Below are positions 5,957 to 39,894 of a stretch of 64,000 bases of DNA, one piece after another. Every line of letters starts with the position of its first letter. Within the stretch, counting starts at the first letter, position 1. A program made the translations under genes and the position numbers. The notes under the pieces are model-generated. The model had not been told where the DNA came from. It worked only from the letters and a program-made list of their open reading frames with translations, and ran no database searches. The DNA is from Bugula neritina (taxonomy: Eukaryota > Animalia > Bryozoa), in contig OZ037770.1 of the NCBI GenBank assembly GCA_964035545.1, forward strand, positions 3,504,662 to 3,568,661. The letters run 5' to 3'.

Positions 5957-6668
5957 TATATGATTATTTGAAGTATTTCTATAATTATTTGAAGTATATC
6001 TATGATTATTTGAAGTATTTCTGTGATTATTTGAAGTATTTCTATGATTATTTGAAGTATTTTTATGATTATTTGAAGTATTTCTATGATTATTTGAAGT
6101 ATTTCTATGATTATTTTGAGGTATTTCTATGATTATTTGAAGTATTTCTATGATTATTTGAAGTATTTCTATGATTATTTGAAGTATTTCTATGATTATT
6201 TGAAGTATTTCTGTGATTATTTGAAGTATTTCTATGATTATTTGAAGTATTTCTGTGATTATTTGAAGTATTTCTATGATTATTTTGAGGTATTTCTATG
6301 ATTATTTGAAGTATTTCTGTGATTATTTGAAGTATTTCTATGATTATTTTGAGGTATTTCTATGATTATTTGAAGTATTTCTGTAATTATTTGAAGTATT
6401 TCTATGATTATTTTGAGGTATTTCTATGATTATTTGAAGTATTTCTATGATTATTTGAAGTATTTCTGTGATTATTTGAAGTATTTCTATGATTATTTTG
6501 AGGTATTTCTATGATTATTTGAAGTATTTCTATGATTATTTGAAGTATTTCTATGATTATTTGAAGTATTTCTATGATTATTTGAAAAATTTCTATAATT
6601 ATTTGAAGTATTTCTATGATTATTTGAAGTATTTCTATGATTATTTGAAGTATTTCTATGATTTTTTA
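5957..6668. repeat. 21-bp minisatellite (CTATGATTATTTGAAGTATTT), about 33 copies with 22-bp variants
   Basis: Directly visible tandem array; it produces the spurious YFYDYLK ORFs. Confidence 0.95.
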
Positions 6669-15546: not shown

Positions 15547-17418
15547 TTAAGGGTTGTTCTTTCTATTAAACCCATCGAAGCCAGGAAAAAGGTAAAGTAT
15601 TTTACCATAAGGAAGAGTATTCCAGATTACAATCAAACTTCCGTTTCTCTCTGAATCTTCATCTGCATAGAGTTTCTTCACTAGTTTAGTCTGTACCTGT
15701 AGAGTAAGTAATGACTAGTAAGATTGTTTATCAATTCACTATTATAGCTGAGACAAGACGTAAAACTAAAAATGTTATTAAAACTAAAGTAGATATTTTT
15801 TTTCAGAGGACAAAAGGATTCAAACATAGAAATGAATAGAATGATATGATGAGAAATAATATTTTGATTTCTTAAATAAAAATTGAAATAGCAAAAAAAA
15901 TTTTGATTTTTAAACATGCCTGCTGGAAGATGGTGTAGAGATCACGGTGACAGGCATGTTTGTAGATTGAAGATACTAGGGCTCTAATCATAGGAGATCC
16001 ATACTTAAGATGTCTTTTTGATGCTAAAATAAAAGTATATGTTGCAGCTCAAAGCATATGGTGTAGACAGAGCAAGCTTAAAATTGTGTTGAGTTTTTTT
16101 TCTGTTTTTAGCATTAGCACGCAATATGGTTAGTACACGGAAAAGCTTACATAACATAGTCAAATTAACTTTAGAAAACAGGCAACAAACTTTTACATTG
16201 ACAAAAAACTGTAGTTGCACACTACTAATAAATAACTATCTCTTGTTATACTTACAGCAGACGTTACTCTTTAGAACAAGAAGATCATCTATATCTCGTA
16301 AAGTTCTACACTCTTCTATTCTAGGTTCTGGTGGTGAGACAGGTCTGATTGGTCTTATCACACTGGGTGTTTCAGGATATACAATATCATCATTAGCTTC
16401 AGAATGTGTAGAAGAGACAGCTTCAGTTTCTTCTTCTTGAGCTGCTGCAAGACTTGATCTGTCTGGACTCACCTCAATGTCTGCTGTGAGACAAACATTG
16501 CAAATATCTTAACTTTGTGAACTAAACAATCTCGAGACACCTAGTTGCTCAAGCATCAAAACTGTGAATCAAGTTAAAGTGTATATTGATTAGATGACTG
16601 GTCTCTGACAGGAAGTCTTCACTAGTTTAACCATTGAACTAAAAGTTCCAGTTTATACTACAAAACAACTACCTCCATTGCTGGCTTCTAGGATGACAAC
16701 TTTAGGTTTTCTCTTCATTCCATCGAAATACAAAGGAGTAAGTAAATCATGAAGTTCAGTGAGGTTGACCTTCTTAAGGTCAGTTCCATAGATGCAATTA
16801 TCTTCCCCACCATGAGTCATGACAACCAGCATATGACATCCCAAGTCTCTGTGTGTTTCTTTTTTCACCTCAGTCTTCACAGTAGACAGCATTTCCTACA
16901 AATTTGAAAATATGTATATAACCAACATAATAAATTCACTTTATTTCAAGTTTCCAAATGACTGTGATTTATGCAATGCAAACAAAAACTTTTCACATGA
17001 ATCTATCTATCGAAAGACCAAACAGTGAAAAAAAAACCAACAAGCTCCAGAAATTTTGATGCAGTTGTAGAGATATTCTAAGAACAATAAAAAAAAACAT
17101 AATTTAATGGATGTAAAAAATAATTTTATTTTGCTAAAATATTTTACATGCTTCAAAAATATTTGATTAAAGGACAATAAACATTATATATGAAAATTTA
17201 CTTGATGGTCAAATAGTGTTCGCATTACCTTCACCATAACAACATACCTCTGCCTTTAGGTCTGTGTGTGTCTCAACATCAAACTGAAGAGATTTCAACA
17301 TGACAGACATATTCTCAACATCAGCATCTGAACCTTCCCTGCATAAGTCTGGTCTTTCAACAAAGTTCTTATTGTTTATTATCAAAGCTCTTCCTCTCTT
17401 TCCGGTCATACTGAACAC
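15547..17418 (-). CDS. Caspase (peptidase C14A) domain, 5 exons, catalytic Cys replaced by Ser
   Basis: p20: VFSMTGKRGRALIINNKNF..REGSDAD..FDVETHTDL, LVVMTHG, IYGTD, MKRKPKVVILEASNG. p10: DDLLVLKS, SKRHLKYGSPMIRAL, NTLPYGKILYLFPGF. Stop at 15547-15549. Confidence 0.88.
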
Positions 17419-20400
17419 CTGGATATAAATATAGTTAGAGTATCACATACAGTAGTGACACACATGAGCCAAAGTTGAGAGTACATAGATAGTGGCATAG
17501 TTTTAAAATAAATAGTAATAGTTAATTCAGATCTCAAGATGCCATATATGATGCCTCCAATTTCTAGGTCTGACAAAAAGCAGCAAAACACTCTGTTAGT
17601 TGCAAAATCAACTTTATATCTTTATGCTTAGTTTTAGGCTTGTTACTTTTTAGGTTAGGTGAACTAAGCAAACTCTTGTTTAAGAGACCAGTTGTCATTT
17701 TTTCCAACAAAACATGTAAGTAGTCAACTAGGCATGCTGGTTGTTTTTACAAAAGTCATTCAGGATATTATTGAGGTTACTGCATGATTCTACTTCATTG
17801 GAAATAGCTTATATTTAACGTTAAGTTTTTACAAACCAAGCATGTATTTGCAAGGCTGTAGAAGTAAATAAAAACAATTTATTGCTATAATAAAATTTCT
17901 TTGCATATAACACTTTACTGGCCCAAAATAGACTATGGTCTATTTTATGCAATCAAAGTTTCTAAGACCATCTGCAAAACATTTACCTAACTTACAAATA
18001 CAGTTGATCGAAATAGAAAATTATGGTAAATTCAACTTCAAGCTAAAAGGTCAGAAAAGAAATTATAATATAAAATGTTTGCCCCACTAGGATTACTCTA
18101 TGACCATAGGAGTTACTGGGAAATCCCAATCCTTCATTCTAAGCAATTCTTTTGAACTCGATTTACAACTCCTTCAGTCTTCAGGTTCTCTTAGCTTCTC
18201 ACCTCCTTAGAAGCACTGCTACTGCTACTACTACTCTTTACAAAAGGTTAAAAGAGCCCACAAAAATGCCTCTCCCGACGAGAATTCAAATGGCAGAAGT
18301 CCAGCTTTCGAGCATGCAAGGCAGGATAAACATTACACCACAAGGACGAAGAAGTAATCTCTACACAAAAGATGCTTTCTAATCATGACAAGCAATTGAA
18401 CCCTAAACTAATAAAAGCAGAGCAGAAACTGTTATGGTGAAACCAAAACGTATAAGTATAGTAAAATGATGGAATTTGAAAATCTGCATGCCTTCAGATC
18501 AATTGATTTTTAAATCTAATTGAACTGCACATGACAATCTCAGTAAAAGAAGTTTTTAGAGACCGAAGTAGTCTACTGGGTGGAGAAAGGAGAGCTGCTA
18601 TAACTTGTGTTCATCAACTGATACGTTCACCTTGTCAGTGTTTGAGAAAAGTTGTTTTATCCTTGGGTTGGTTGTTGGCTTTAGTTCAAGTTGTACCAAC
18701 TTCATGTCTTTCTCATTCTCTTCATCAGGGTACAGATTGTCATCATCTTCAGAGAGATCACTCAGATTATCATCATCAAATTCATCTGCAGTCATATGGT
18801 TAGACAGATTATCGTCAACATTTGAAATCGTAGACTGCGTATCTCGCCTAGTCAACAGAAGCTGAAGCAAATAATTTTAAAAGAAACAATTAGACATGAT
18901 TTGCAGATAATTGTAAGGCAAAATTTGCAAAGCCTATTATTTTACTAATAATGTGGGTTTGAAAATTTAGTCCTGTCTAAAAATTTTACCATTTGATTTG
19001 TTCTGCTCTCTTCGAACTTTGAGCTCAGAAAGAAACTTCTTCAATTGATTTGTTTCTGCTTCAGACAAAGTCTCACCTGAGCAAAACAGACATAATTAGT
19101 AACATTAAAACTGGATGAGAGGCATTAGAAAAATATGAGACATAATCAAAAGCTCATGTATCAAGTTTATACTTTATAAGTCAGCCTAGAAGTTCAATAG
19201 AGTAGCTGTGTAGTTTGCTAATGTCCATCTAGCTGCTATTAAAATTTATCAATGCATGAAAAAACAGTAAATACTATTTAAAAACATTTGGGCAAACCAA
19301 TCAAAATTGAATCATAGTTGTAAACATACATGGATGAATTAGAGCACTGGGTATTTCTTCATCGTTACACAATATCTTTGAAGATCCATGACACTTCTTG
19401 ACATTTGGTGGCAGTTGGTTTTTTGGAGAACGGAGACACCATTTAGGATGCAAAAGCTTTTTAGGGCAAGAAACCCCCAGTAGCATGCAGTGAGCACAGA
19501 TGCAGGCAGTAACTGGTCGACTAGCAGTCCAAGTTCCCATCACATGTCTGAGAATGTTGTTTGTGGCTGAAATGAGTTTTTCCCACATCCTTGGAATGTG
19601 AGGAGCATCGGATGACACATAGAGTAAGACTCTTCTAGATTCATAATCATGTGTCAGCTGTGTGTATGTCTCATCTTGATAGACATTAGCTCCATTTCTC
19701 TTCACCTTCATTGTAGCAAACTCTTTAGAAAACAGTTCTAGCAAACCAACTGTCATTTGATGGTAGACATGCTGCGGTAAAGCCAGGCCCTTAAACTTTA
19801 TCTCAGTGTGAAGGGCCATTTCCTTTGGTGAGGTGTATGACACACCTTGATGTTCCTTAGCAAACTGAGGGATGATGAAGTACGATTCATGGACATCATT
19901 TTCCAGAGGGCCATACAACAAACGGAATGTTTTAAGCAAGCAAACAGCAGTTTCAACATCATGGGAGCTTTTGAATAATGTTTCCTTTGCGATCAAATAT
20001 GTTAGAAGAGATTTCATCATCAAGCCCGTTGTTTTGAAGCAATTCACAGACTCTTCAAACTCTTCTGTTTCAATTCTCAACCCTTCTTCGGAAATGCATG
20101 ATTGGAAGTGATCAACTCTTTTCTGCCAGATCTCTGGGTCATGATGATACAAGACACAGAGTAGTTTGGTAACTTCCGTGATCTTCTGAAATATGTATGG
20201 TTTGAGTGCTTCAATATTCTTATACCACAAGACTTTACCGCAGTCGTGCATGTATGTGAGAATAGTATCTAGCTGATGTGGCTCAACCTCAATACCTTCT
20301 TTTCTCAATTCTAGCAGAATAAATGAAAAAGAGCTGAAAGCTCTGGTTAAAGACAAAACTTTCTCATTCACTTCTTCCCAGATCAGTGGCAAAAGCTTAA

Positions 20401-23400
20401 CAAAGTGCTGACTACTTAGAAGGAGCGAGCTCTTTATCATTTCAAACTCAACATACTTGTCATCCTTTCCAATCTCATAAACATCTTCACTGGCAAAAAC
20501 CTTTCCATTTGATGAATTGAAATGCTGAATTTTCGAAAAATCTCCATCTGAACTTTTCTCTTCATCAAGAACCTCTTTGCACAGCTGTTCAGATACTTCA
20601 AGAAAGTTTTCTTTAAGCTGTTGGAAGTGTTGACTCTGAAACTTATCCTTGTGTGTGAAGACAAGCTTAGGTGGGCCAAGAGTAGGATGGGCGAGATAGA
20701 GGTGAGACATAAAGTCAAAGGCTAACTTTCTGACAGCCTCTTTGTTTGTAAACTCATTTGAAATCTGGTCATACTGCTCCATGTTGACAACAATTACCGG
20801 TACACAATTCTGTCTCAGTGTTAAATGGTATGTGATATGATAGACCTCCTGGCCTCCCATGTCTATGAGACGAAGAGTTGTACCATCCACCTCCACCTCT
20901 TCCACCTTAACCCTTACGCGATCAATGGACCATATATGTCCCTCAAAGCGACACTATCCACAGATCAATGGACCATATATGGTCTTTTAGGTAAACAAAC
21001 AATAGCGCTTACTTTAAACTTCCAGTTTTCAACCGAACAGCCTAAAAGTTTTTGTAATTGATGCTGATACTGTAGCTTGGTAATTTTGGGATAATTATAG
21101 CCAATAAATTTGATTAAATTAATAGCTACCAAGCCAGCTAGTTGCTTTTCAATTTAATCCTTAAATTTCAAAATTATCGGTAAATTTTAACGCTACTTTC
21201 AAATGCAAGAAATTGCTGTCAAATTATAGAGAGCCAGTTTATTTTATTTAAATACCATTTAGAAGAACATCTAAATAAACAGAAATGTTAAAGTCACTAT
21301 ATTTTGAATCATATTATAAATTAATTTTTTCATTTTGAGTTTTCAATTTTAAAATGGCGGTTCTGAGAGGTCAAATTTAAATGACTGATTTTAGCTAGAA
21401 TTAAGGTCTCCCTTCGCTTTAAGAAGCTTTTTATAATAGAAAACACTCTTAAAATTATAATAACCAGTTTATTTAGGGCCAAAATCAAGTGTAACTTTTA
21501 ATAATGAAATTGAAAGTTATGCAAAATTTGCTAGCAAAATTCGCGATAAACTCAAACGAGGCATAAAATTACGTAACTTCAAAGTTGATCGCGAAAGGGT
21601 TAAACACTTTTGTGGTCTCATCATACTCTGCATTCGAACTTCTGTCAGTCAGAACTCTCCTCCTGTCAGTGCTCTGTAATGTTCTGATTAGACTGGTTTT
21701 ACCTGCCATTGTGTTCCCCAACACCACTATTGTAGCAAATGGCAGATTTCTACCAGCACCCTTAACCAAATCTGTGTAGTATTGTCGCACAGCATCTAAT
21801 CCTCTTTCACAAACTTCTAGTGGAGGAGATGTAAGAGCATTGCAATCATCTGTATCCAGTCTGTGAAGACGTGTTAGCTGTAGTATCTCAGGGTTCAAGG
21901 ATGTCATGGATCTGTTGTCGGATATATTCAGTGTGTGCAGATTACTCACCGTGCACACTGAAGATGGGAGACTGGTGAATTTATTGGAAGATATGTCAAG
22001 TATCTGTAATTTTTGTAGATTCTGTATCCTAATAATACATTACATTCATATTATCAGCACATACTAGATGTGAGTGAGATCTAATTATAGCTGTCATAAA
22101 TCTACAATGATAGTGAAGCAATTATACACAGAATTTGGACGTATGAAGTGGCAATGGCTACAGTGACCTTATAATATAAAACCCTTTAAAGTAGTATGGG
22201 ATATAATTGTAATTCTAGAATTTTCATTTATTGATATTCTCACAATTATCAAGTGCTATTTTTGATATTTTAAATCATTTACAAAACTACAATTACAATG
22301 AATTGGTAAAAGATATTAAAAAAGTAATTTAGTGTCACAATTCATAATGCTTCCATAGACAATGTTGTTTTATATAACATGTAGTTGAGTATAACTGCTT
22401 AGACTGATATTTTATTAGATATGTGTAGTATATATATTATAAATATGTACCATGTATAATACAGTTATAATCAAACTATATAGAGGCAAAGTTATTATAT
22501 ATGAGTCTGCATGAAGTATTACAGAAAGTATGCCAGGGAAAAACACAATTCTCAGCATTACACTTTAACAAACAATGCTAAGAAATACACATTAATATTT
22601 GTTGAACAGAAAGTTCAATTTTTATCAATTTTGCTATATGATGAACTACAAGTTCAGGGTACCCTTTTACTATCTTGCAGGGATATTACGTGTGCATTCT
22701 TTAAAAGAAAGTTTTGTAATTTAAAAAGGAGAGCAAATCATTGAACATGTTATAGATATGAACAACTTGTCATGTATATACCATTTCTAGCTTTACATAG
22801 GAGAGGTATGAACACCATAATGTAGTTTAACTGTGTTGACTATTCTGCTGAAAAAAATGTTTTAAATGTGACACACAAACCTCTCAGGTAGAGTAGATAG
22901 TTTACATCTCCTCATATTCAACTCTTTAAGTGATGTGAGAGATGACACAACTTCTGGTATTGTGTTGAGAGAAGTACCTCCTATGTCTAGTTTCTCTAAC
23001 TGAGTCAGCTGACACAGACTGTAATATAAAGTGTATGATATATGTAGTCTGCATAACTATAGTATTTTATACTATATACACATTTTGTTTTCAACCAGGT
23101 AAAATTATATACAACTTAACTACCAAGCGACTGATTGTAGCATTGTACATGCAAAGCATGAAGAAATATCAGTTCATTATAATAATGTGAAAGTATAAAA
23201 TTATTAAACTCAGTGAATGCTAATAAACTAAAAATAACTGCTGACTATTCACTAAATTTTATAGCGCAAGAATATATAATGGCCTATCTTAAAATTATGT
23301 TATTTCCACCATATATACAAACTACTACATATATATAAATTCCTTTAAAAAAGTACATTTCATGTTGCAGAGCATGAGAAGTTAACAGTTTATTACAATA

Positions 23401-26400
23401 GTATACAAGTATTCAATTATTATATATACTCAGTGTGTGAATACTAACCAACTATACAACTGCTTACTATTATTTACATTTTATAGCACAAGAATATATA
23501 ATGGCATACCTTAAATTATGTTGCTTTTTCAATATTACAGTCTATATTTCATATAAAATTAAAAAAAAATTGCATTTCACATATTTTTCAATTAAATAAT
23601 GACAAGCCCTAGTTTTACTTGGTAGGAAACTCTTTTATGATTTCAAGTATTAAATTCTTTAAACAATACAAAAACTGTGACAAACAAACCTCTCAGGTAG
23701 AGTAGATAATTTACAGTCCCACATATTCAACTCTTTAAGTGATGAAAGTGATGACACAACCTCTGGTACTGTGTAGAGAGGATTCCCTCCTATGTTTAGT
23801 TTCTCTAACTGAGTCAGCTGGCACAGACTATAAACATACAGTGTTTGATATATATTTTAGTTTTACTTATACAGAGTACAATTACTAGAGTTGCTATAAC
23901 TACCACATGATTATGAAGGATAAAAAACTATACTATCAATTTATTCCTTCATAACAGATCTATATAATGTAACATACTATCATAACGCTGGACTGCTAAG
24001 TAAAAATATAACAGTTTATTATAATAGTACACAAGTATTTATTTTTAAACTCAGTGAATACTAATAAACTAGAAATTATTGCTTACTAATAATTACACTT
24101 TTATAGCACAACAGTATATAATGGCATATAACCTTAAAATTGTGTTATTCCCACAATATTATAAACCATTGCATATATATATGTGTGTAACTTCAAAACA
24201 TTGCATTTCACATTTTTCCAATTATTTTTCAATTATACAATGGCATACCATATAATTACACTTGGTAAGCATATAAAGTTGTCAAATATTAAATGTTTCA
24301 AACAATACAAAAACTGTGACAAACAAACCTCTCAGGTAGAGTAGATAATTCACATATCCTCATATCCAACTCTTTAAGTGATGTGAGTGATGACACAACT
24401 CCTGGTACTGTGTTGAGAGGATTGGACCCTATGTCTAGTTTCTCTAACTGAGTCAGCTGACACAGACTGTAATATAAAGTGTATGATATATATGTAGTCT
24501 GTATTACTATAATATTTTATACTATATTCACATATTGTTTTCAACCAGGTGAAACTATATACAACTTAACTACCAAGCAACTTATTAAGTAGCATTGTAC
24601 ATGCAGAGCATGAGAAGTTAACAGTTTATTATAATAGTATACAAGTATCCAATTATTATATATACTCAGTGCATGAATACTAATAAACTATACAACTGCT
24701 TACTATTATTTAAATGTTCATAGCACAAGAATATATAATGACATATACCTTAAAATTTCACTATTTTCCCAATATTACAGACCATATTTCATATAGAATT
24801 CAAAAAAATTGCATTTTACATATTTTTCAATTGTATAATGACATGCCCTAATTACACTTGGTAAGAAACTATTTTATGATTTCAAGTCTCAAATGTTTCA
24901 AAAAACACAAAATCTGGGACAAACAAACCTTTCAGGTAGATGAGATAATTTACAGTTCCACATATTCAACTTTTTAAGTGATGTGAGTGATGACACAACT
25001 TCTGGTACTGTGTTGAGAGGATTCCATCTTATGTTTAGTTTCTCTAACTGAGTCAGCTGACACAGACTATAAACATACAGTGTTTGATATATTTAGTTTC
25101 ACTTATACAGAGTACAATTACTAGAGTTGCTATAACTACCACATGATTATGAGTGATAAAAAACTATACTATCAATTTATTTCTTCATAACAGATCTATA
25201 TAATGTAACATACTACCATAACGCTTGACTACTAGGTAAAAATATAACAGTTTATTATAATAGTACACAAGTATTTATTTTTAAACTCAGTGAACACTAA
25301 TAAACTAGAAATTATTGCATACTATTAATTACATTTTTATAGCACAACAATATATAATGGCATATAACTTTAAAATTGTGTTTTTCCCACAATATTATAA
25401 ACCATTGCATATATATATATGTGTAACTTCAAAACACTGCATTTCATATTTTTCAATTATACAATGGTACACCATAATAACACTTGTTATGCATATAAAG
25501 TTGTCAAATATTGAATGTTTTAAACAATACAAAAATATTGTGACACAAACCTCTCAGGTAGAATAGATAATTTACAGTTCCCCATATCCAACTCTTTAAG
25601 TGTTGTGAGTGAAAACACAACTTCTGGTACTGTGTTGAGAGTATTCCAACCTATGTCTAGTTTCTCTAACTGAGTCAGCTGACACAGACTGTAATATAAA
25701 GTGTATGATATATGTAGTCCTCATTACTATAATATTTTATACTTTATTCACATTTTGTTTTCAACCAGGTAAAACTATATACAACTTAGCTACCAAGCAA
25801 CTTATTGCAGCATTGTACATGCAGAGCATGAGAAGTTGACAGTTTATTATAATAGTATACAAGTATTCAATTATTATATACACTCAGTGTGTGAATACTA
25901 ATCAATTATACAACTGCTTACTATTATTTACATTTTTATAGCACAAGAATATATTATAATGGCATACCTCAAATTATGTTATTTTCACAATACTACAGAC
26001 CATATTTCATATAGAATTAATAAATTGCATTTCACATATTTTTCAATTATATAATGACATAACCTAACAATACTTGGTAAGAAATTATTTTATAATTTCA
26101 AGTATTAAGTGTTTCAAACAATACAAAAACTGTGACAAACAAACCTCTTAGGGAGAGTAGATAATTCACAGTTCCCCATATTCAACTCTTTAAGTGATGT
26201 GAGTGATGACACAACTTCTGGTACTGTGTTGAGAGGATTCCATCTTATGTTTAGTTTCTCTAACTGAGTCAGCTGACACAGACTATAAACATACAGTGTT
26301 TGATATATTTAGTTTCACTTATACAGAGTACAATTACTAGAGTTGCTATAACTACCACATGATTATGAGTGATAAAAAACTATACTATCAATTTATTTCT

Positions 26401-29400
26401 TCATAACAGATCTATATAATGTAACATACTACCATAACGCTTGACTACTAGGTAAAAATATAACAGTTTATTATAATAGTACACAAGTATTTATTTTTAA
26501 ACTCAGTGAACACTAATAAACTAGAAATTATTGCATACTATTAATTACATTTTTATAGCACAACAATATATAATGGCATATAACTTTAAAATTGTGTTTT
26601 TCCCACAATATTATAAACCATTGCATATATATATATGTGTAACTTCAAAACACTGCATTTCATATTTTTCAATTATACAATGGTACACCATAATAACACT
26701 TGTTATGCATATAAAGTTGTCAAATATTGAATGTTTTAAACAATACAAAAATATTGTGACACAAACCTCTCAGGTAGAATAGATAATTTACAGTTCCCCA
26801 TATCCAACTCTTTAAGTGTTGTGAGTGAAAACACAACTTCTGGTACTGTGTTGAGAGTATTCCAACCTATGTCTAGTTTCTCTAACTGAGTCAGCTGACA
26901 CAGACTGTAATATAAAGTGTATGATATATGTAGTCCTCATTACTATAATATTTTATACTTTATTCACATTTTGTTTTCAACCAGGTAAAACTATATACAA
27001 CTTAGCTACCAAGCAACTTATTGCAGCATTGTACATGCAGAGCATGAGAAGTTGACAGTTTATTATAATAGTATACAAGTATTCAATTATTATATACACT
27101 CAGTGTGTGAATACTAATCAATTATACAACTGCTTACTATTATTTACATTTTTATAGCACAAGAATATATTATAATGGCATACCTCAAATTATGTTATTT
27201 TCACAATACTACAGACCATATTTCATATAGAATTAATAAATTGCATTTCACATATTTTTCAATTATATAATGACATAACCTAACAATACTTGGTAAGAAA
27301 TTATTTTATAATTTCAAGTATTAAGTGTTTCAAACAATACAAAAACTGTGACAAACAAACCTCTTAGGGAGAGTAGATAATTCACAGTTCCCCATATTCA
27401 ACTCTTTAAGTGATGTGAGTGATGACACAACTTCTGGTACTGTGTTGAGAGGAATCGATCCTATGTATAATTTCTCTAACTGAGTCAACTGACATAGGCT
27501 ATAAACATACAGTGTTTGATATATTTAGTTTTACTTATACAGAGTACAATTACTAGAGTTACTATAGCTACCACATGATTATGAGAGATAAAAAATTATG
27601 CTATCAATTTATCCCTTCATAACAGATCTATATAATGTAACATACTATCATAACGCTTGACTACAATATAGGTAAAAATATAACAGTTTATTATAATAGT
27701 ACACAAGTATTTATAATTTAAAACTCAATGAACACTAATAAACTAGAAATTATTGCTTACTAATAATTACATTTTCATAGCACAGCAATATATAATGGCA
27801 TTTAACCTTAAAATTGTGTTATTCCCACAATATTATAAACCATTGCATATATTTGTGTAACTTCAATACATTGCATTTCATATTTTTCAATTATATAATA
27901 AATGACATACCGTAATAACACTTGGTATAAGCATATAAAGATGTCAATTATTGAAGGTTTCAAACAATAAAAAGAATTAGCAATACAAACCTCTCAGGTA
28001 GAGTAGATAATTTACAGCCCCCCATTTGCAACTCTTTAAGTAATGTGAATGATGACACAACTTCTGGCACTGTGTTGAGAGGATTATATGCTATGCCTAG
28101 CGTCTCTAACTGAGTCAGCTGACATAGACTGTAATATAAAGTGTATGATATATATGTAGTCTGCATTACTATAATATTTTATACTTTATTCACATTTTGT
28201 TTTCAACCAGGTAAAACTATATACAACTTAACTACCAAGCAACTTATTGCAGCATTGTACATGCAGAGCATGAGAAGTTAACAGTTTATTATAATAGTAT
28301 ACAAGTATTTATAATTTAAAACTCAATGAACACTAATAAACTAGAAATTATTGCTTACTAATAATTACATTTTCATAGCACAGCAATATATAATGGCATT
28401 TAACCTTAAAATTGTGTTATTCCCACAATATTATAAACCATTGCATATATTTGTGTAACTTCAATACATTGCATTTCATATTTTTCAATTATATAATAAA
28501 TGACATACCGTAATAACACTTGGTATAAGCATATAAAGATGTCAATTATTGAAGGTTTCAAACAATAAAAAGAATTAGCAATACAAACCTCTCAGGTAGA
28601 GTAGATAATTTACAGCCCCCCATTTGCAACTCTTTAAGTAATGTGAATGATGACACAACTTCTGGCACTGTGTTGAGAGGATTATATGCTATGCCTAGCG
28701 TCTCTAACTGAGTCAGCTGACATAGACTGTAATATAAAGTGTATGATATATATGTAGTCTGCATTACTATAATATTTTATACTTTATTCACATTTTGTTT
28801 TCAACCAGGTAAAACTATATACAACTTAACTACCAAGCAACTTATTGCAGCATTGTACATGCAGAGCATGAGAAGTTAACAGTTTATTATAATAGTATAC
28901 AAGTATTCAATTATTATATATACTCAGTGTGTGAATACTAATCAACTATACAACTGCTTACTATTATTTACATTTTATAGCACAAGAATATATAATGGCA
29001 TACCTTAAATTATGTTGTTTTTACAATATTACAGTCTATATTTCATATAAAATTCAAAAAAAATTGCATTTCACATATTTTTCAATTATATAATGACAAG
29101 CCCTAGTTTTACTTGGTAGGAAACTCTTTTATGATTTCAAGTATTAAATTCTTTAAACAATACAAAAACTGTGACAAACAAACCTCTCAGGTAGAGTAGA
29201 TAATTTACAGTCCCACATATTCAACTCTTTAAGTGATGTGAGTGATGATACAACTACTGGTACTGTGTTGAGAGGATTCCCTCCTATGTATAGTTTCTCT
29301 AACTGAGTCAGCTGGCACAGACTATAAACATACAGTGTTTGATATATATTTTAGTTTTACTTATACAGAGTACAATTACTAGAGTTGCTATAACTACCAC

Positions 29401-32085
29401 ATGATTATGAGGGAGAAAAAACTATACTATCAATTTATTTCTTCATAACAGATCTATATAATGTAACATACTATCATAGCGCTGGACTGCTAAGTAAAAA
29501 TATAACAGTTTATTATAATAGTACACAAGTATTTATTTTTAAACTCAGTCAATACTAATAAACTAGAAATTATTGCTTACTAATAATTACACTTTTATAG
29601 CACAACAATATATAATGGCATATAACCTTAAAATTGTGTTATTCCCACAATACTATAAACCATTGCATATATATGTGTAACTTCAAAACATTGCATTTCA
29701 CATTTTTCCAATTATTTTTCAATTATACAATGGCATACCATAATAACACCTGGTAAGCATATAAAGTTGTCAAATATTATTTGTTCCAAACAATACAAAA
29801 ACTGTGATAAACAAACCTCTCAGGTAGAGTAGATAATTCACAGCTCCACATATACAACTCTTCAAGTGATGTGAGTGATGACACAACTTCTGGTACTGTG
29901 TAGAGAGGATTCCCTCCTATGCCTAGTTTCTCTAACTGAGTCAGCTGACACAGACTGTAATATAAAATGTATGATATATATGAGTCTGCATTACTATAAT
30001 ATTTTATACAATATCCGCACTTTGTTTTCAACCAGGTAAAACTATATACAACTTAACTACCAAGAAACTTATTGTAGCATTGTACATGCAGAGCATGAGA
30101 AGTTAACAGTTTATTACAATAGTATACAGGTATTCAATTATTATATATACTCAGTGTGTGAATACTAACCAACTATACAACTGCTTACTATTATTTACAT
30201 TTTTATAACACAAGAATATATAATGGCATAAATACCTTAAATTATGTTGTTTTCACAATATTACAGACCATATTTCATATGGAATTAAAAAAAATTGCAT
30301 TTCACATATTTTTCAATTATATAATGACATGCCCTAATTATACTTGGTAATAAGAAACTATTTTATGATTTCAAGTAATAAATGTTTCAAACAATACAAA
30401 ACCTGTGACAAACAAACCTCCCAGGTAGAGTAGAAAATTTACAGCTCCTCATATCCAACTGTTTAAGTGATGTGAGTGATGACACAACTTCTGGTACTGT
30501 GTTGAAAGGATTATCTTCTATGTGTAGTTTCTCTAACTGAGTCAGCTGACATAAACTGTAATATAAAGTGTATGATATATATGTAGTCTGCATTACCATA
30601 ACATTTTATACTATATTCACATTTTGTTTTCAACCAGGTAAAACTATATACAACTCAACTACCAAGCAACTTATTGTAACATTGTACATGCAGAGCATGA
30701 GAAGTTAACAGTTTATTATAATAGTATACAAGTATTCAATTATTATATATACTCAGTTTGTGAATACTAATCAACTATACAACTGCTTACTATTATTTAC
30801 ATTTTATAGCACAAGAATATATAATGGCATACCTTAAATTTTGTTATTTTCACAATATTACAGACCATATTTCATAAAGAATTAAAAAAATTGCATTTCA
30901 CAGATTTTTCAATTATATAATGACATAACCTAATTATACTTGATAAGGAACTATTTTATGATTTCGAGTATTAAATGTTTCAAACAATACAAAACTGTGA
31001 CAAACAAACCTTTCAGGTAGAGTAGATAATTCACAGCCTTCCATATTCAACTCTTCAAGTGATGTGAGTGATGACACAACTTCTAGTGCTGTGTTGAGAC
31101 GATTCCATCTTATGTCTAGTTTCTCTAACTGAGTCAGCTGACATAAACTGTAATATAAAGTGTGTAATATATGTAGTCTACTGTATCATATATATAATAA
31201 TATAATCTGTACTCAGCTATAATGTAAATTATGGAGCAAACAATTTTGTTGAAACAGGGTACAGCAAAAAAAAGCTATTATGCCATGTTATACGTGTAAT
31301 GGGTGCCCTGTGTAGAATTGAGTGATTAGATGTACATGTATAAAGACATCCTGTAAGTTTAATAGATAAGGGGTACATCTACAATGTAATGCGAGTATAT
31401 AGTATGATTTATAATAATAAATGGTTTACTTTGTTATAGCTAATCCGACACAAATTAGCATGTATTTAATATTCCGAAAATATTTTATTTTTAAGTATAT
31501 ATGGCTACATATAATATGCTTATAATATATTATGTGTTGCAGATAAACACCTTCTGTATAATCCTACATGTATACATGTACTGCAATAATATGTTACTTC
31601 TGTATTCAACTACATAAAACATGTTTTAATTTATGATAGCGTGTGTAACACTACAGTTTCCCACTGTCTAATTTCTACAACTCGTTCAGCTGGTAGAGAT
31701 ACAATGTTATACATATTACTATAGCTTTATATAGTGCATGATTACATCATGAGTATAAGAATGTACTTCAGCATTGACCCAGATACATGCATCGTGGGTG
31801 ATAATTACCACAACTAAACTCATTTAACATTTACACAGCTATCATAATAGACACTCACTTGTCTAGACTTGCTCTGTCAGTCAGGTGAGAAACACGTAGA
31901 CGCAGGGCTTTACCAGCAATCTCTCCAATGTTGTTTGGAATTCTCCCTTCCAGTTTCAGATCTCTGATGCAATTTCTCCCAACTTCATGTTTCACCTCAG
32001 CAGCAGTATATGACTTGGTATTAGCTTTCCATACATCCCACCAGTCTACAGGAGGCTGACCAGAATGTCTGAACCAGATTCTCAT
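15547..32085 (-). CDS. LRR-Roc-COR (Roco, MFHAS1-like) protein with C-terminal caspase-like module; this copy is disrupted by a piggyBac insertion and a +1 frame break
   Basis: Exons in transcript order: 31859-32085; 14 LRR exons; 21604-22028 joined to 19330-20910 (TE removed); 18990-19076; 18631-18861; 17248-17418; 16673-16895; 16256-16483; 15920-16023; 15547-15696. Intron phases are compatible except at 18990/18861. About 1785 aa if repaired, or 1421 aa to the TAG at 18848-18850. Confidence 0.8.
19330..22028 (-). CDS. Final LRRs + Roc GTPase + COR exon (interrupted by TE at 20911-21599)
   Basis: G1 GNTMAGKTS, G2 ETT, G3 DMGGQ, G4 THKD. COR motifs LTYMHDCGKVLWY, LLKTFRLLY, YFIIPQF. LRR cap LTSPPLEVCERGLDAVRQYY. 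Confidence 0.9.
20911..21599. mobile_element. Non-autonomous piggyBac-type element (689 bp)
   Basis: TTAA TSDs at 20907-20910 and 21600-21603. TIRs CCCTTACGCGATCAA / CCCTTTCGCGATCAA (14/15). Subterminal direct repeat GATCAATGGACCATATATG. Precise removal restores ETTKVFKVEEVEVDG. Confidence 0.92.
22881..31147 (-). repeat. Tandem array of 14 LRR exons (138 nt, 46 aa, phase 2/2) within about 600-bp exon+intron units
   Basis: Exons: 22881-23018, 23690-23827, 24329-24466, 24929-25066, 25551-25688, 26145-26282, 26767-26904, 27361-27498, 27991-28128, 28589-28726, 29184-29321, 29817-29954, 30418-30555, 31010-31147. All are open with AG/GTTTGT boundaries. Consensus SLCQLTQLEKLxIxxNPLNTVPEVVSSLTSLKELxMxxCxLSTLPE. 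Confidence 0.95.
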
Positions 32086-32814
32086 ACTCTCTGTAACATC
32101 ATACAATGACAGTTTAATTATTACACAGTGTTAGCAGGTGATGTCTGTCATTCTGAAACCTGTCACATATATCTATTATTTGCTGCATGTGTGTCAGTCA
32201 CCATAGCTATATATAGACATATCTGACTACTTTAGGTTTATGAAAGTAAAATCTGCAAATTTAAAATGATCTCTATTTTTTTAAAAACAACTGCTTTGTG
32301 TAAAAACTTTGAAATTATGCTGCTTCAGTTTCAATGAAGATCTTTTTAAATAATGTTGACATATATTAAAAATTATATAAATATATTAATACATTTTAAA
32401 ATTGTTGTATTCTTACCTTCGTATGATGATGTGAACGTTGCAGTCAATGACAAGTACGTTACTAGTAGTAAAATAAGAATTTAAAAGTATTTCTATGGCT
32501 GGCCAGCCGAAACCTAAACTTGACTTCTAACATTCGAAATCTCGCTTCTGCCCCGCTGGGGGTATATCCGGTGTGACATTGTAACACTAAACACAACATC
32601 CTCCCTCTCAACAAAGAACGGTGATAACCCGTGTAAAATAAACGTAACATCCTTTACCAGTAATATGACAGTAACAGTGAAGATGAACATGGAAAGAAAT
32701 AAAATAAAAAGTAACATATATGTGTAGAATCTCCAAAGAAGACAGGACAATAAGAGCTAACTGACTGAGTGTAGTAAAACAAACTATGTACAAAGTAAGG
32801 AGTATCAAAGCCTC

Positions 32815-35800
32815 CTAGTTCATATCAAAATCTTTAAATCTTGATGGAAGCACCCCTCTACTGGACCTAACACCTCGCCTACCGATAGGGGGGACAACAC
32901 TGCGAGTTGGGGTAACTGCTTTAACTTCCTGGTCTGACACAACTGGTGTTGGAAGATTGGGGTTTGGTAGCTCTTCAGTATCCGTTGGGCTAGAAGAGTC
33001 CAGCTCGGAACTAGGACGAACAATCGTGTTATTGGGTTTCAAATGAACTCGATTTCTCCTTAGGAGTCGAGACCCATTATCAACGAGGTATGACCTCGGT
33101 GCACCATGATGTCCAACCACACATCCAGGTGTCCAGATCTTTTCTGGACCAGCTCTCATAAATACTTCAGAGCCTAGGGGTAAATTGGGTAGTTCCTTTG
33201 TCCGCTGATCGTAATATGCTTTAGCTGTCTGTTGTCTTGCTTTGAGAGCACCAGTGGAATTTACTGTACTTGGAGTCAGGAATGCGGTAGTCGTCGGGAG
33301 TCCAGTTCTCAAATTCCTGCTGAAAAGCATCTCTGCTGGACTATATAGACAACCACTCAGTGGTGTCTCTCTGTAGACTAGTAGAGAGTGATACACATCA
33401 ACCTGAGACTGTTCACACTTCCTTAAAAACTGCTTCACAGTCTGAACATACCGTTCAGCAAGACCATTTGACTGATGATGGTGTGGACTGGAGGTAACAA
33501 TATCAAAACACCAATCCTTACCAAACTGTTTCATCACATGACTTGTAAAGGGCATATTGTCCGCCATAATGGATTTGGGCACGCCATGAATTGAAAATAT
33601 GGATTTCAGGGCCATGACAACATGTTCTGCAGTTTTTCCACCTAATAAACGTAGTTCGGGAAAGTGTGACATGCAGTCAACTACTAACAAGTAGTCCTGA
33701 CCGCGAAACTGCATTATATCCATGGCTACAGTGTACCACGGCAATGTGGGCGTGTCATGAGGCATAAGTGGCTCCTTTGACTGCCTGTTCGCAAACATAG
33801 CACACTCACTGCACAGGCTAACCTTTGAATAGATGTCCTGATTCAGTCCCGGCCAACACAGTTGGTTTAAGGTCATACTTTTCATTTTCTGGCTCTTTGC
33901 CAGGTGCTTTATGTTCTATATGAACAATGTTCCACTGATAGCTCGAACAGGTTGAATGTCACAGGAACAAAAAAAATATGAAAAGATAAAGAAATTTATG
34001 TTCTCCAATATACTTTTTTATTTTTTTCAAAAGCCAATTCATGTTTAAGTTATAGCTTGTTGAAAAACACAGTCCCCCTTCCACATTCTTTTCAATTTAT
34101 ACGCTCCTGACTTGTTATTGTGTCTCAATATGCCTTGTATTTGAGTGCTTGTTAGTCTCGCTTCACTAACTTTGCCTATACTTCACAAGTGCCAGTGCTG
34201 CTGGCTCAAAAGCTAAATGTTATAAACTGTCAGCTAAAACCCAATCTTGTATTCCTAGGTTGGTTGGCCTAAATAAAACAATAGTCAAATCATGATTTCA
34301 TGTTTTAAAAATTTACTCTATTCTAACCTGCTGCCTAGCTAGTTCTATTTTTGATGTATAATTACAAAATTTGTGATACATTTTTTTGGCAACCATGTGA
34401 TTTATAAAATGCAGTAATGGTACTTATAATATTATATTATTATCATTATAATATATTATATAGTATTATGTGTGTTTTTATTATACTGCATAATATCTAT
34501 TTTATTATTGTTGTTGTGCAAACAAGTGCAATTAACCTAGTTTTCAAAATGTACCTCTAAATTATCAGAATATCAGTTTAGATATTTTCATGCTTTGTAA
34601 GGTAAACCTAAAAAAAGAGGCTGTATTCCCAAAGTAAAGGGTGTTGAACTATGAACTATATTAGATTAGCCACTCTGCTACCAAGTGCGTCAGTATAATA
34701 TTATATGAATAGCTCTGATGCTTTGTCTCCGGTGGCTGGCTGCGATATGATAACTTGGCCAACTTCCAAGAGTTTAAAATTGGCGCAATTATTCAAGAGG
34801 TTACATACTGCACAGAGCTAGCAGTGATAGTAACCTTGCTATTGGCAGTACTTATTACAACTGCCAGCATATAAGCTGCATTGTAGAATGCCGTTGGGGT
34901 AGGCTATTAAAACCAAATTCTGCTCTCTAATATACCTAAGACACAATGCAGCAACATAATTGTTCATTTCAAATTACATTGCCACCCTTACATGAGCTGT
35001 GGGCTTCATAAAGATTCATATGATTAGAGATTTATGCTATAGGCTAGCTATGATGAAAATAACACACCATTGTCAAAGTTAACTTCAAGTATGTTGTTTT
35101 CCAGAAACTCAGTAATGTCCATTTATCTCTCGCATACAAATACTTATGTAATAGCATACAGTTTAAGTTTTATTTTAAAGCACATCTGCAAACTCTACAA
35201 TAAGAGCTTGCTTCCAGTCTATTTCAGACCTGTTTTTGTAGCTAGTAATACGCAAGCTACTTATTTTTAAACTTTTGGGTTATTTGTTCAAAACCATTAG
35301 CTTTGCTAGTAACCCGAGACTATTGCAACAGTTGACTGCTATCAACATGAATTGACAGCCTAATAATTATAACCCGTTTGCGCGCGAAATATTTATGTAA
35401 TGATAGTGACTCATATAGTGAGCAACCCATTAACGATGACTGCGTGGTCTAGAGGTTAGAGGCGTCAGCGACGAGTTGGTTGGTCATGGTTCAACCCTGT
35501 TTTGTTGCAATTTTTTTTGTCAATTTATGCAAATCCTACGCATGTATAATAAATATGGCTATAAGTGTAAAGTTTTTTTTTTAACTTTTGTTCAACAGTA
35601 AGACAACATACATGCATAATAATTAGATACTGAACGCTGGACTAAACCTTAAATTGATCTTATAGAATACAATGTACTTAAAATAATCATATGTGAATTA
35701 GAGAAACTGAAAGTACACCTGCTGTGCTATAGACCTTTACTGACAAGACTGCAAAGTGAAGTGATTTAGCTGAAATTAACTCTGCCAAACAAACAAAGAA

Positions 35801-38752
35801 TTATGTTGTGCTAAGGCATTTTCAATATATTATTGTAACATAGTGAGATGATTCAGCTAAGTGCTAATGTAAAACAGGGAACATTATCTTGGCAGAAATC
35901 CAATAGATTGCCAATTTGTGCGAGAGGGTACTATATGTTATTGTGATAGCGCAGAGCGGCAAACGTACTAGGAATGTTATAATTAGTCACAGGAGCGTAG
36001 CTAGAACCACCATATGAAGAATTTAGAAAATTGCAGTGAAACTTGCAAAATGGTGTATGTTTTTACCAAATTGTGAAGAGCATAAACAGAATTTCAAAAA
36101 ACAAAGAAAGTATATTAGAGAAAACATATCAAGGAATGTCAAGTTTAACTTTTAGACTTTATAAAATGAATCCCCTGTGCTACAGCAGTGGAACATGGAG
36201 GGTATAAAATTTTACTTATTATGCAACAACTTTCTCAGAAAATTTTTTATTGAAAAATTAAAAAAGTATATGAAAGAGGAATGCAAGAGCTATCTTTTCA
36301 TGTAAAATTTGTTAATGTGAGACAAAAACTGTTCGAGCTATCCCCTGGAAACCGTTTATATATAACATAAAGCAGTGCTTGAATCTGGAAAGTAATGACC
36401 TTAAACTAACTGTGAATAAACAGACCTACGGGCTCGCTCTTTACACTTCTGTATTCCCAAATGTCCCTGGTGAATCTTGTTCAACATTTCTTTTCGTGCA
36501 CCAACCGGAACAACTAGGCGCTCACCTACGAAAAGAAAACCACCAGCTTCATATAGTTCATCTCTTACCAACCAATAGGGTTGTAGGTTGGCAGGTGCAT
36601 GACTACGATGCGTCCAGTCCCAACCCTCTTGGCACGCCTGCTTGAGATCCGACATTGTTGTGTCATCCGAATATGCCGTACTCAACCAGTCACTCATCTC
36701 ACTTGCAACCTCCAGCGAGTGAACCATCACTACTTCATCCTCCAGGTCAGCTTGGGTCGACGGAGTCTTAGTGCTATACGCTCTAGACAGAGTATCAGCA
36801 AGATAGAGATATTTCCCTGGGACATAGGTGACCTGGGCTACTTCATAACGTTGTAATCTCAGGAGCAGTCGTTGTAGCCGTGGAGATGCTTTATGTAAAG
36901 GTTTCTTCATTATGGATAACAAGGGACTGTGATCAGTCTGTAGTGCTATAGGACGACCATAAACATAGCTATGGAAGTACTCACAGCCAAAGACCATAGC
37001 TAGTAACTCTTTATCAATTTGGGGATAATTGATCTCAGCACTGGTCAGGGCCCGAGAGCCATAGGCTACAGGCCTACCCTGCTGTAGTAGCACAGCACCA
37101 AGCCCAGACTTTGAGGCATCTACTTGGAGATTTACCGGCTTGTTTACATCAAAGTACTTCAAAACACTGTCATTCATGAGAACACTTCTGATATTGGCCA
37201 TGGCTGATTGCTGTTCTGGACCCCAGAACCAATCCACATCCTTCTTCAAAAGGCATCTGAGAGGTTCAGTAATTGTGGACATATTCGGGATGTAGTTCCT
37301 AAGAAAGTTGACTGTGCCCAACAGCCGTTGTACACCATTTCTGTCTGTGGGTTCAGGCATGTCTGCAATAGCTGACACCTTGTTTGGGTCAGGCTTTAGA
37401 CCATCTACGGACACAATATGCCCAAGGTAGTTGACTTCTTGCCGATTAACTTGAATTTTTTCTTTGTTAAAACGCACATTGCACTCCCGGGCTCTCTGCA
37501 ATACTTTGTGGAGGTTATTGTCATGTTCCGCCTGCGTGCGACCGGCCACAATTAGGTCATCAAAGTATATGGAGACCGCTAGATCACCAAAAATCTGTTC
37601 GACACGTTTTTCGAACACTTCGGCAGATGAGTGAAGGCCAAATGGTAGTCTTTTATAGCAATATCTGCCAAATGGCGTGTTGAACGTAGTGAGAAGACTA
37701 CTTTCAGGGGATAGGCGGATATGCCAATAGCCATGCTTCATATCCAGAATAGTAAAGCGTTTCATGCCATTAAACCTGGTGGCAGCGGTATTTGTTTCGG
37801 CTCCTGTGTCAACTTTGAAAGAATTTCTTTCACTGTCCTTCAACTTGACATCCACAAACCACGACTTCTTAGCCTCGACTGTCTCTACCATTCCGATAAA
37901 CAAGGTTGAAAGATTTTTATCCAGCACTTCTTCTCCAGTCTCGACTCCAACGGCATGAACGAGCTTTTTTGGGCATCGTTTTTCAAAGTGATTTAAACCA
38001 TGACAACTGTTACACTTTTTGCCATATGCCGGACATTTGCCGTAGACATGTTCATACGAACAGAATCTGCATTTTATCTTCTTGTCAGTGGTAAGTCCAC
38101 CCTTGTGAATGGGTTTGTTGACAACAGTGGCAACCTGTCTCATCGCTAAACTAGACTTATCCCCATCAGCAATCAGGCTCAGCTGTGCTTCAGTCATCTC
38201 AGTAGCCCGAATATCCTCTACGGCTTTTTCTAAAGTCATCGTGTTGTCACGAAGTAATCTTTCCTTCAGCTTTACAGATGTCAAGCCAAAAACGATACGA
38301 CATAGCAACATCTTTGACTTCACACCCTCTGGAAAGTCACACCGCGATGCCTGTGACTTGAGTCGCTTTAAATATACATCTATAGGCTCACTTTCAGTCT
38401 GCGACATCGACCAGAACACAAACCACTCATAGAGCTCATTTTTTCTCGGGTTACAATATGTATCAAACATATCCAGTACATCACTTAGTACCGTCTTACT
38501 TTTCCCAGCTGGGGCCTCCAACTGTGAGAAAATCTCATTGGTCTCGTCGCCAGCAATATGCAGAAACATTGCTATCTGCCTCCGGGATATGGCTGCATTG
38601 CCGGCAGGTTCAGGGTCTGTGGGATTCGCTTTGGGAGTTAGAACTACATCAATAGCCATCAAATAATTTTCAAAATTTCTGCGGAATCGTTTCAAGTTCT
38701 CCGACACATTGCCCTCAAAACACATCCCAGAAGGCTGTCTGAGACCATCCAT
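32815..38752 (-). CDS. gag-pol polyprotein, split by the nested insertion and carrying an apparent in-frame PR/RT deletion
   Basis: ORFs 36401-38767 and 32815-33885 rejoin as KERARRSVY-WPGLNQDI once 33857-36414 and one TSD copy are removed. The protease FKVDTGAETN runs almost directly into RT FTILDMKHGYW. Confidence 0.85.
33857..36414. mobile_element. Non-autonomous CAC..GTG DNA transposon (CMC/EnSpm-like) nested in the integrase
   Basis: TIR CACAGTTGGTTTAAGGTCAT vs CACAGTTAGTTTAAGGTCAT (19/20), extending imperfectly to about 90 bp. 2-bp TSD AA. No transposase ORF. Confidence 0.85.
35437..35520 (+). mobile_element. tRNA-derived SINE-like remnant inside the DNA transposon
   Basis: Box A TGGTCTAGAGG, box B-like GGTTCAACCC, then a T-run. 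Confidence 0.45.
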
Positions 38753-39894
38753 GACTTTATCAAACAACGGACAAATTCACAAATAACAAAAGAAAACCAC
38801 CACAATACTAAACTCAAACTGCAACCATCAAAAGAGCCGCAAGTTCAACATAAAAAGAAAAAACAAACACAAAACTTCAGGCAGAACAACAGCAAGTATC
38901 AAACAAACAATTCAAATCACTGGAAGAGTAGAGAAAAGCCGTCAATGAATTGATTGCTCACAACCAGTGAATCATATAATCAGACTTAATCTGCAGCTGA
39001 AGTTAGTACGCGCTGCCACCATGTTGTATTCTTACCTTCGTATGATGATGTGAACGTTGCAGTCAATGACAAGTACGTTACTAGTAGTAAAATAAGAATT
39101 TAAAAGTATTTCTATGGCTGGCCAGCCGAAACCTAAACTTGACTTCTAACATTCGAAATCTCGCTTCTGCCCCGCTGGGGGTATATCCGGTGTGACATTG
39201 TAACACTAAACACAACAAAAATGATTTGAATTTAAAGCAGCCAAAAGACGCCAAATTATTATTTCATATCTATGCATGCACAAAAAAGGTACAAATAGCA
39301 ACATCAAGTTAAAACTTTTTATATCTGACACTGCATACTTCTTACCCTATGAGTCACACAGTCAATATTTACAGGATGATTCTAGAAATACATGGACTAG
39401 TATATAGCTAGAACACTTTCTGATAGTGAGATATATAAAGTTGATTATTTGAATGTTACTCATATGTTTACTATGGAAACAAGCAAACTACCACAGAAAA
39501 GTTTTTGAAAACTCATGTCCCAATAGTTAAAACATTTACTAGTTTTGCTAAAATGAAACTCACACCCATGCAGAGCTAAATTTGTTTAAACCTATATTCA
39601 TAGTAACAACCAGTAGATAACTTTGGTTGAAAGCAAAACTTGTAACTAAGTTTTTCATCAAAAATCTATCAAAACAACTCACCATCTGTTGCCATGGTTA
39701 CTAAAGATTTTACTGCTGATTTATTTCAATTCTGTACATCTAAAGGTTGGCAGCCCCATCTCTACAAAATGTACATGCAGATTCCTAAAAAAATGGCAGG
39801 TTTGAAAATAATAGATTAGCTGCAATATTTTTAACTGCCACTATTAAGCACTTTATACACAAATTTGTATAATAGTCAACAGTTATTTAACTAA

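Follow-up and report, generated by a model that had tools for sequence, protein, structure and literature searches.

Structure of the Gene in the Window

The window analysed here, a stretch of 64,000 nucleotides from the bryozoan Bugula neritina (assembly GCA_964035545.1, contig OZ037770.1, positions 3,504,662 to 3,568,661), carries on its minus strand a copy of a gene in which an array of leucine-rich repeats (LRRs) leads through three further LRRs, a Roc-COR module and an acidic linker into a caspase p20/p10 fold, with all junctions in phase once an insert is set aside. The original prediction, made from the letters of this stretch, had described a single minus-strand exon series of this kind; the order and the splice phases of that series stand, but its frame is not intact, since a 689-bp transposon sits in Roc. 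Exons were searched singly and joined only in scripts for frame tests, in which those of the window copy, without the insert, gave 1766 codons with a single stop at the end; apart from the transposon there is no further frame break.

A putative first coding exon of 13 nt (39683..39695), with an ATG and a phase-1 donor (GTGAG), is in frame with the next exon and corresponds to a 10-codon first exon in a Watersipora ortholog; the start codon lies probably at 39695, upstream of where the original prediction had begun the gene. The N-terminal cap exon follows (31859..32090, with an ATG inside at 32085); it ends in phase 2 and has 62 homologous exons in the genome. The array (22881..31147) consists of 14 symmetric exons of 138 nt, starting at 31147, 30555, 29954, 29321, 28726, 28128, 27498, 26904, 26282, 25688, 25066, 24466, 23827, and 23018, each with AG..GT borders, phase 2 on both sides and two 23-aa LRRs. 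The resulting total of 28 LRRs, followed by three more, agrees with the 28 plus about three counted at the outset. The large exon comprises a 5' part (21600..22028), with these last three LRRs, the Roc G1 motif (GNTMAGKTS) and the G2 threonine, and a 3' part (19330..20906) with G3 (DMGGQ), G4 (THKD), and COR. Beyond it are a helical exon (18990..19076, phase 1/1), which has a counterpart in Watersipora, and the acidic linker exon (18631..18785, phase 1/0).

The caspase part occupies five exons. The first large-subunit exon (17248..17418) keeps the S1 arginine in REGS and matches Pfam Peptidase_C14 with an E-value of 3e-10, and the second (16673..16895; E-value 7e-8) contains the catalytic His (16812-16814) and, in the motif EASNG, a Ser (16680-16682). 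They are followed by an exon with the inter-subunit linker and the first small-subunit strand (16256..16483), a small-subunit exon that keeps the second S1 arginine and has a GC donor here and a GT donor in most paralogs (15920..16023), and the last exon (15547..15696), with the small-subunit helix, the dimer strand and the stop codon. The linker-to-caspase junction (SNTDK/VFSMTG), which had been predicted to be in phase, is indeed phase 0/0. For the COR-to-linker junction an acceptor at 18861 was rejected, being out of phase and at a place where paralogs carry stops. The paralogs show that the real acceptor is the one at 18785, which is in frame and restores the reading; all 10 of the closest paralogs retain it, and several of these carry stops on its upstream side. 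Inspection by eye of the exons read gave no sign of a signal peptide or a membrane segment.

Two runs, both in the form of contigs, were compared with the locus, one of them taken as RNA by guess and the other (X2) DNA-like. In the RNA-like run, depth falls on exons and is zero in unique introns, and contigs join the cap to an array exon (loose end 23022) and array exon to array exon (joint 23018 to 22881), stemming from family members and not provably from the window copy. These LRR-to-LRR splices are seen in contigs, which cannot reveal exon skipping.

Transposon Insertions in the Window Copy

The insert in Roc (20911..21599, no strand assigned) is a non-autonomous TTAA-specific (piggyBac-like) transposon of 689 bp, with 15-nt terminal inverted repeats (CCC..GGG), lying between G2 and G3 and flanked by duplicated TTAA sites at 20907-20910 and 21600-21603. 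At least 40 full-length copies with 91-97% identity are found elsewhere in the genome. The site is empty in 19 of 19 paralogs, which read straight through it, and a contig of the DNA-like run X2 has a joint skipping 693 bases that corresponds to the empty site. An ordinary intron of ~690 bp is therefore ruled out, the gap being a dispersed transposon absent from all paralogs. If the element is retained, the reading frame ends after residue 878, at a point between switch I and G3. Because of this insertion and of the Ser in place of the catalytic Cys, both of which had escaped the original prediction, the window copy cannot act as a sensor-protease as it stands. The most probable status of this copy is that of an allele disabled not long ago or of a young pseudogene, and a truncated LRR protein of ~878 aa is the most that it could encode.

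The window copy could still be functional if the transposon were removed as an intron (GT 21607, AG 20906) or if other individuals had an empty allele. Such a GT..AG pair does exist, in frame and with the loss of three residues, no other break interrupts the gene, and empty-site contigs occur in both runs. However, the AG at 20906 lacks a pyrimidine tract and the donor at 21607 is weak, splicing would cost the conserved Val-Phe that follows the G2 threonine (F45 is nearly invariant), no joint splicing out the transposon is found among the RNA-run matches listed, and the empty-site contigs may derive from paralogs that are 92-96% alike, all of which makes a functional copy unlikely in our view.

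The presumed first intron holds a Gypsy-type long terminal repeat (LTR) retrotransposon (32403..39217, minus strand) with identical 196-bp LTRs and a 5-bp target duplication (ATTTT); it lies ~310 bp ahead of the cap exon, and its pol is split by ~2.5 kb of other DNA. With its identical LTRs it is young, and represents a second recent insertion within the same gene. Further copies of the TTAA transposon are located within or near clusters of the gene family described below (C8:4873475, C5:11547167, C1:32827771, and C6:6216387).

Identity of the Roc, COR and Caspase Domains

The assignment of the exons to Roc-COR, acidic linker and caspase p20/p10 put forward in the original prediction was borne out by motifs, by Pfam Peptidase_C14 and by fold matching. 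Roc motifs G1 to G4 are present in the window copy, where the transposon splits the domain, and in 19 of 19 paralogs, and an intact paralog exon matches Pfam Roc with 34.7 bits (cut-off 27). In these single-exon profile searches the match to Pfam COR-A stayed below the cut-off. We consider the identity of COR settled nonetheless, because the fold predicted for the Roc-COR part of an intact paralog (571 aa, predicted local distance difference test score 91.7) has LRRK1, LRRK2, and CtRoco (the Chlorobium Roco) as its top structural matches (E-values 7e-16 to 1e-13, template modelling scores 0.5-0.6); by this model, the domain after Roc is COR.

The p10 exons alone gave no Pfam match, and the corresponding domains of Watersipora cover positions 1-230 of the 233 of the Peptidase_C14 profile. 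Among solved structures the best matches of the caspase are caspase-3, CED-3, caspase-9, and caspase-8, and the caspase part is of the animal type (metazoan p20/p10). In the window copy EASNG aligns to the QACRG of solved caspases, with the His kept and the catalytic Cys replaced by Ser (AGC), so that, judged by its residues, this copy is a pseudo-caspase and not an active one. The His-Cys dyad is present in 12 of the 20 paralogs read. As for the S1 pocket (Arg179, Gln283, Arg341), both arginines are kept in all 21 copies, and the glutamine is replaced by Glu in 18 of them, the window copy included.

A Gene Family with the Same Architecture

At least 82 Roc-COR exons were found in the assembly (216 Mb), rising to at least 87 with a profile search, both counts being lower bounds. 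All of them, 82 of 82 and then 87 of 87, are followed on their own strand by a caspase exon no more than 16 kb downstream (~0.5% would be expected at random sites), and for 79 of the first 82 it lies within 7.6 kb. The family is spread over seven chromosome-scale contigs, with 30 genes in a cluster of ~3.7 Mb around the window. Exons were read in 20 full loci, the other copies in the genome being followed by coordinates and short motif matches. Nineteen of these 20 paralogs are open to the caspase stop with matching splice phases (18 from Roc G3 and one partial locus from mid-COR), the exception having one stop in Roc-COR; one acceptor in the set is unassigned. As read from the genome, the LRR-Roc-COR-caspase fusion is real in this family.

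The fusion is also present in Watersipora subatra, in which the RefSeq proteins XP_067947674.1 (1419 aa) and XP_067948342.1 (1413 aa) and seven more models have Roc-COR and caspase in one chain, most of them with LRRs and with His-Cys intact. When mapped to its genome, XP_067948342.1 has the layout of the window gene: a tiny first exon and a cap exon are followed by exons with two LRRs each, then by a single large exon for LRR-Roc-COR, and at the end by the same seven tail exons. RefSeq names these Watersipora relatives "MFHAS1 homolog". Metagenome contigs of other species, with 38-39% identity, have the same order and the motif QACAG. Three Watersipora models (P0055, P0182, and P0185) have N-termini of the form MG...S, resembling a myristoylation signal, ahead of the shared WYRH cap motif and without a counterpart in the window copy; judging from these termini, some Watersipora members may be membrane-anchored.

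A simpler arrangement would be that the Roco and caspase parts are adjacent but separate genes. With the acceptor at 18861 the frame would stop just after COR, the Watersipora models P0055, P0059, P0069, and P0070 do end there, and no RNA contig bridging COR and caspase is found among the matches listed. Against this stand the conserved in-frame acceptor at 18785, a caspase exon that opens on a phase-0 acceptor and has no start exon of its own, the 87 of 87 linkage of Roc-COR and caspase, and the full-length RefSeq fusion models of Watersipora, one with the same exon order, which leave separate genes as a highly improbable explanation. In animals, thus, the two parts are not always separate, since both the paralogs and Watersipora have them fused, nor did the family prove to be one already described: our literature search, with most subscription journals outside its coverage, found no paper on an animal Roco-caspase.

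Within the reach of our searches the fusion turned up only in bryozoan or likely bryozoan sequences. Searches of long proteins with the caspase region, limited by word and by length such that absence elsewhere is not established, gave only Watersipora, and none of the non-bryozoan Roco matches had a caspase. The fusion was probably assembled independently, because its caspase is of the animal type.

The caspase part is not uniform within the genome. A second subfamily (HACSG in L045:5549-5770), with ~15 paralogs on C1/C3, is fused to Roc-COR exons of ~65% identity, and, by sequence, caspases of at least two distinct types occur in the family. The tail exons are mosaic, one paralog being 99-100% identical to the window copy in the small-subunit exons and 84% in the linker, and the tree of the catalytic exon conflicts with that of Roc-COR; together, both results indicate gene conversion. 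Separately, three clusters (C1:32.79-33.67 Mb, C7:5.03-5.11, and C7:7.58-7.73 Mb) have cap and caspase exons and no listed Roc-COR match, the one on C1 with LRR array exons as well; they contain either unscored or diverged Roc-COR exons, or LRR-caspase genes with a different middle domain.

Variation and Turnover of the LRR Array

The 14 array exons differ from one another mainly at codons 11, 13, 14, 34, 36, and 37, which correspond to the x residues of xLxxN on the concave face. At these six codons nonsynonymous differences (pN) reach 0.41, compared to synonymous differences (pS) of 0.13 over all codons and 0.27 at the same six, and the scaffold codons have a pN of 0.06. These values hint strongly at diversifying selection on the concave face of the LRRs, but do not amount to a formal test because the exon pairs are not independent. 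The array also contains exact duplications, with identical runs of 607 bp at a period of 598 and of 1265 bp at a period of 1216. The breakpoints of the latter lie inside exons, and exon 9 is a hybrid of exons 11 and 7. Being exact, these duplications indicate that the array has grown very recently and that exon turnover is ongoing. Among paralogs, the distance from the cap exon to the Roc exon varies several-fold.

Pseudo-Caspase Members

Within the local cluster of 30 genes the catalytic residue is Cys in 18 and Ser in 10, with two unscored. The Ser is encoded by AGC in a clade of at least eight genes (support 100/100 with this codon masked) and by TCC in two genes that belong to another clade. 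Over the caspase exons the AGC clade has a dN/dS (ratio of nonsynonymous to synonymous rates) of 0.24-0.29, about 0.27, for pairs up to a pS of 0.27-0.30, and the Cys members one of 0.29-0.34, all these figures being pooled over non-independent pairs in a family with evident gene conversion. A deep divergence with such low dN/dS implies that the dead site is old and that the fold is still under selection. The random decay of one pseudogene was rejected as the origin of the Ser, given at least eight genes that share it, a dN/dS of about 0.27 and a second origin from another codon. By these sequence criteria, the Ser clade looks like a class of pseudo-caspases maintained alongside members of the active type.

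The same data bear on the idea that signalling is non-proteolytic throughout the family, with the caspase fold used as a scaffold or interaction module (compare cFLIP and the scaffolding role of MALT1) and the catalytic Cys dispensable, hence repeatedly lost. It would fit with the 10 genes, out of 28 scored in the local cluster, that have a catalytic Ser, encoded by two different codons, with a purifying selection that is equal with or without Cys, and with the change from Gln to Glu in the S1 pocket of most members. Nevertheless, His and Cys are both kept in 18 of the 28 local genes, in the contigs of other species and in most Watersipora models, as are the two S1 arginines in 21 of 21 copies read, and we find a purely non-proteolytic family rather unlikely.

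Other Features of the Window

Elsewhere in the window, two direct repeats of 307 bp (10253-10559 and 14163-14469), 94% alike, surround a gag-like open reading frame (14178-13654) and are the remnant of an older LTR element, and positions 5953-6667 hold a 21-bp tandem repeat with 34 copies and 93% matches. On the plus strand, at ~50200-61500, the open reading frames, compared by eye, form a multi-exon gene resembling a TMTC-type protein O-mannosyltransferase with TPR repeats; one of its introns includes a 38-bp tandem array (51059-51563).

Proposed Function

The interpretation that we favour, with moderate confidence, is that the family provides single-chain LRR-Roc-COR-caspase sensors for immunity or cell death, which would be activated by COR-driven proximity and accompanied by inactive partners similar to cFLIP. 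Initiator caspases are switched on when they are brought together (induced proximity). The proteins would be cytosolic, with the arc of LRRs binding a foreign or damage-related ligand, and the bound ligand would shift the monomer-dimer cycle of Roc-COR toward the dimer. In the model of the Roco cycle the GTP form is a monomer and the GDP form a dimer (PMC6337361). Pairing of COR with COR would then unite the C-terminal caspase domains, the acidic linker giving them room to meet, with no adaptor or death-fold prodomain, and the united domains would trigger cell death or signalling. Ser members, unable to cut, could pair with Cys members through COR and the dimer strand of the caspase, and tune them as cFLIP-L tunes caspase-8, either lending the specificity of their LRRs or damping the response. 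Ligand binding, activation by dimerisation and the immune role are what we infer from domain content and variation. Of the sensor-switch-effector scheme in the original prediction, the fusion and the variable LRRs hold for the family, but not for the window copy as an acting protein, which is disabled by the transposon and by the Ser in place of Cys.

Several points weigh against this proposal. The S1 glutamine is Glu (EACSG) in most Bugula members, so that even in those with Cys activity may be weak or changed. Since Roco proteins are for the most part dimeric when purified (PMC6337361), the scheme would need a brake, and none is visible in the sequence. The COR-linker-caspase joint is absent from the RNA-run matches listed, and the dN/dS figures have the pooled, conversion-prone basis already described.

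Two other roles would use the same proteins. The first is self/non-self recognition between colonies, leading to fusion or rejection, instead of pathogen sensing. Hypervariable sensors of variable copy number coupled to a death protease would suit it; however, the allorecognition proteins known from invertebrates reside at the cell surface and are encoded at a single locus, and this family is spread over seven contigs, with no signal peptide or membrane segment evident by eye in the exons read. Even with bryozoans named among the colonial animals with allo-incompatibility cell death (PMC8195603), we judge this role improbable. The second is programmed tissue turnover (polypide regression, brown-body formation or metamorphosis), with an expansion unrelated to immunity. 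Its caspase is of an ordinary animal type, with matches to caspase-3, CED-3, caspase-9, and caspase-8, and DAPK1 is a Roco protein with a death role; yet a housekeeping trigger of death has no need for 87 paralogs, for change on the concave face or for rapid exon turnover, and turnover seems to us a quite improbable explanation.

Extending the favoured reading of immune or cell-death sensors, a more ambitious and clearly tentative version, doubtful as a whole, would be an adaptor-free, GTP-gated innate receptor system of bryozoans. In its ~100 single-chain sensor-caspases the ligand surfaces would be remodelled through duplication and skipping of exons and through crossover within them. The conserved Ser members, as sensors or as brakes, would form heterodimers with active members by way of COR, and the whole would amount to a sensor/helper network in an animal, with a Roco GTPase at its base in place of NLRs.

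If the favoured reading is true, it would be a third animal route from recognition to caspase activation, besides the STAND apoptosomes and inflammasomes and the death receptors, and it would come from a phylum in which immune genes have received hardly any study. Caspase activity would then be a direct readout of dimerisation, and a natural reporter for the way in which the monomer-dimer state of Roc-COR, the switch of LRRK2, controls a C-terminal enzyme, and the active and dead members found side by side permit a test of regulation by pseudo-enzymes. The window copy is a poor candidate for the bench, for which intact Cys-type paralogs and the Watersipora models are better. What its locus adds is a long array visibly turning over, a conserved class of pseudo-caspases and a fresh knock-out by a transposon.

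Comparison with Known Systems

Bacterial LRR-AP-GTPase(Roc)-COR-effector proteins have been described as a predicted counter-invader system, whose list of at least 24 effectors includes caspase (Kaur et al., 2021, PMC8195603). Like the bryozoan family they have fast-evolving N-terminal LRRs, Roc-COR and a C-terminal effector in one chain, with several paralogs per genome. In contrast, the bryozoan genes are animal and spliced, have LRRs in an exon array and end in a metazoan-type p20/p10 caspase, not in CHAT, and, whereas the effector varies among bacterial paralogs, it is a caspase in 87 of 87 bryozoan copies. Common descent of the fusion with these bacterial proteins looks unlikely. The top feature match in the ESM Atlas, a cyanobacterial COR-CHAT cluster with a score of 0.86, is a lead only. 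The architecture had been thought uncharacterised in animals, which agrees with our finding no animal paper, but a precedent exists in bacteria (PMC8195603); the LRR-GTPase-COR-caspase design is thus known, and it is its occurrence in an animal for which no paper was found.

The closest parallel to the array is in brown algae, where exon-shuffled LRR-ROCO genes, candidate immune receptors, have tandem phase-2 symmetric LRR exons and a diversification of the concave face (Teng et al., 2024, PMC11378527, which cites Zambounis 2012). Both features are shared by the bryozoan array. The algal exons, however, are of 72 bp with one LRR, compared to 138 bp with two, and the algal proteins end after COR, without the caspase of the bryozoan family (0 mentions of caspase in PMC11378527).

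Among animals, MFHAS1/MASL1 and invertebrate Roco proteins share the LRR-Roc-COR core, with ends that are Death, TIR or GT4. The nearest non-bryozoan matches were LRR-Roc-COR-Death of Owenia, LRR-Roc-COR-GT4 of Branchiostoma and LRR-Roc-COR of Lingula, and a Roco-TIR is known from Aplysia (PMC9334734). In the bryozoan family the effector is the enzyme itself and not an adaptor. As a separate observation, Branchiostoma belcheri P0161 and P0177 (GT4 glycosyltransferase) and Owenia P0156 (Death) point to effector swapping on animal Roco proteins, as in bacteria.

In caspase-8/cFLIP-L a caspase activated by proximity stands beside a catalytically dead paralog, and this pair, Apaf-1/caspase-9 and the NLR inflammasomes all have the same sensor-switch-effector logic as the bryozoan proteins. 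Unlike them, the bryozoan proteins have no DED or CARD prodomain and no adaptor; their switch is a Ras-like GTPase and not a STAND ATPase, and everything is combined in one chain. The "NLR-like" label of the original prediction survives as an analogy, with no STAND ATPase behind it and with the order of the domains reversed: NLR/STAND proteins have a central NACHT or NB-ARC ATPase, an N-terminal effector and C-terminal repeats, and the bryozoan ones run from LRRs through a Roc GTPase switch to the effector. The bryozoan protein is a Roco protein and not an NLR, which by analogy may work like one.

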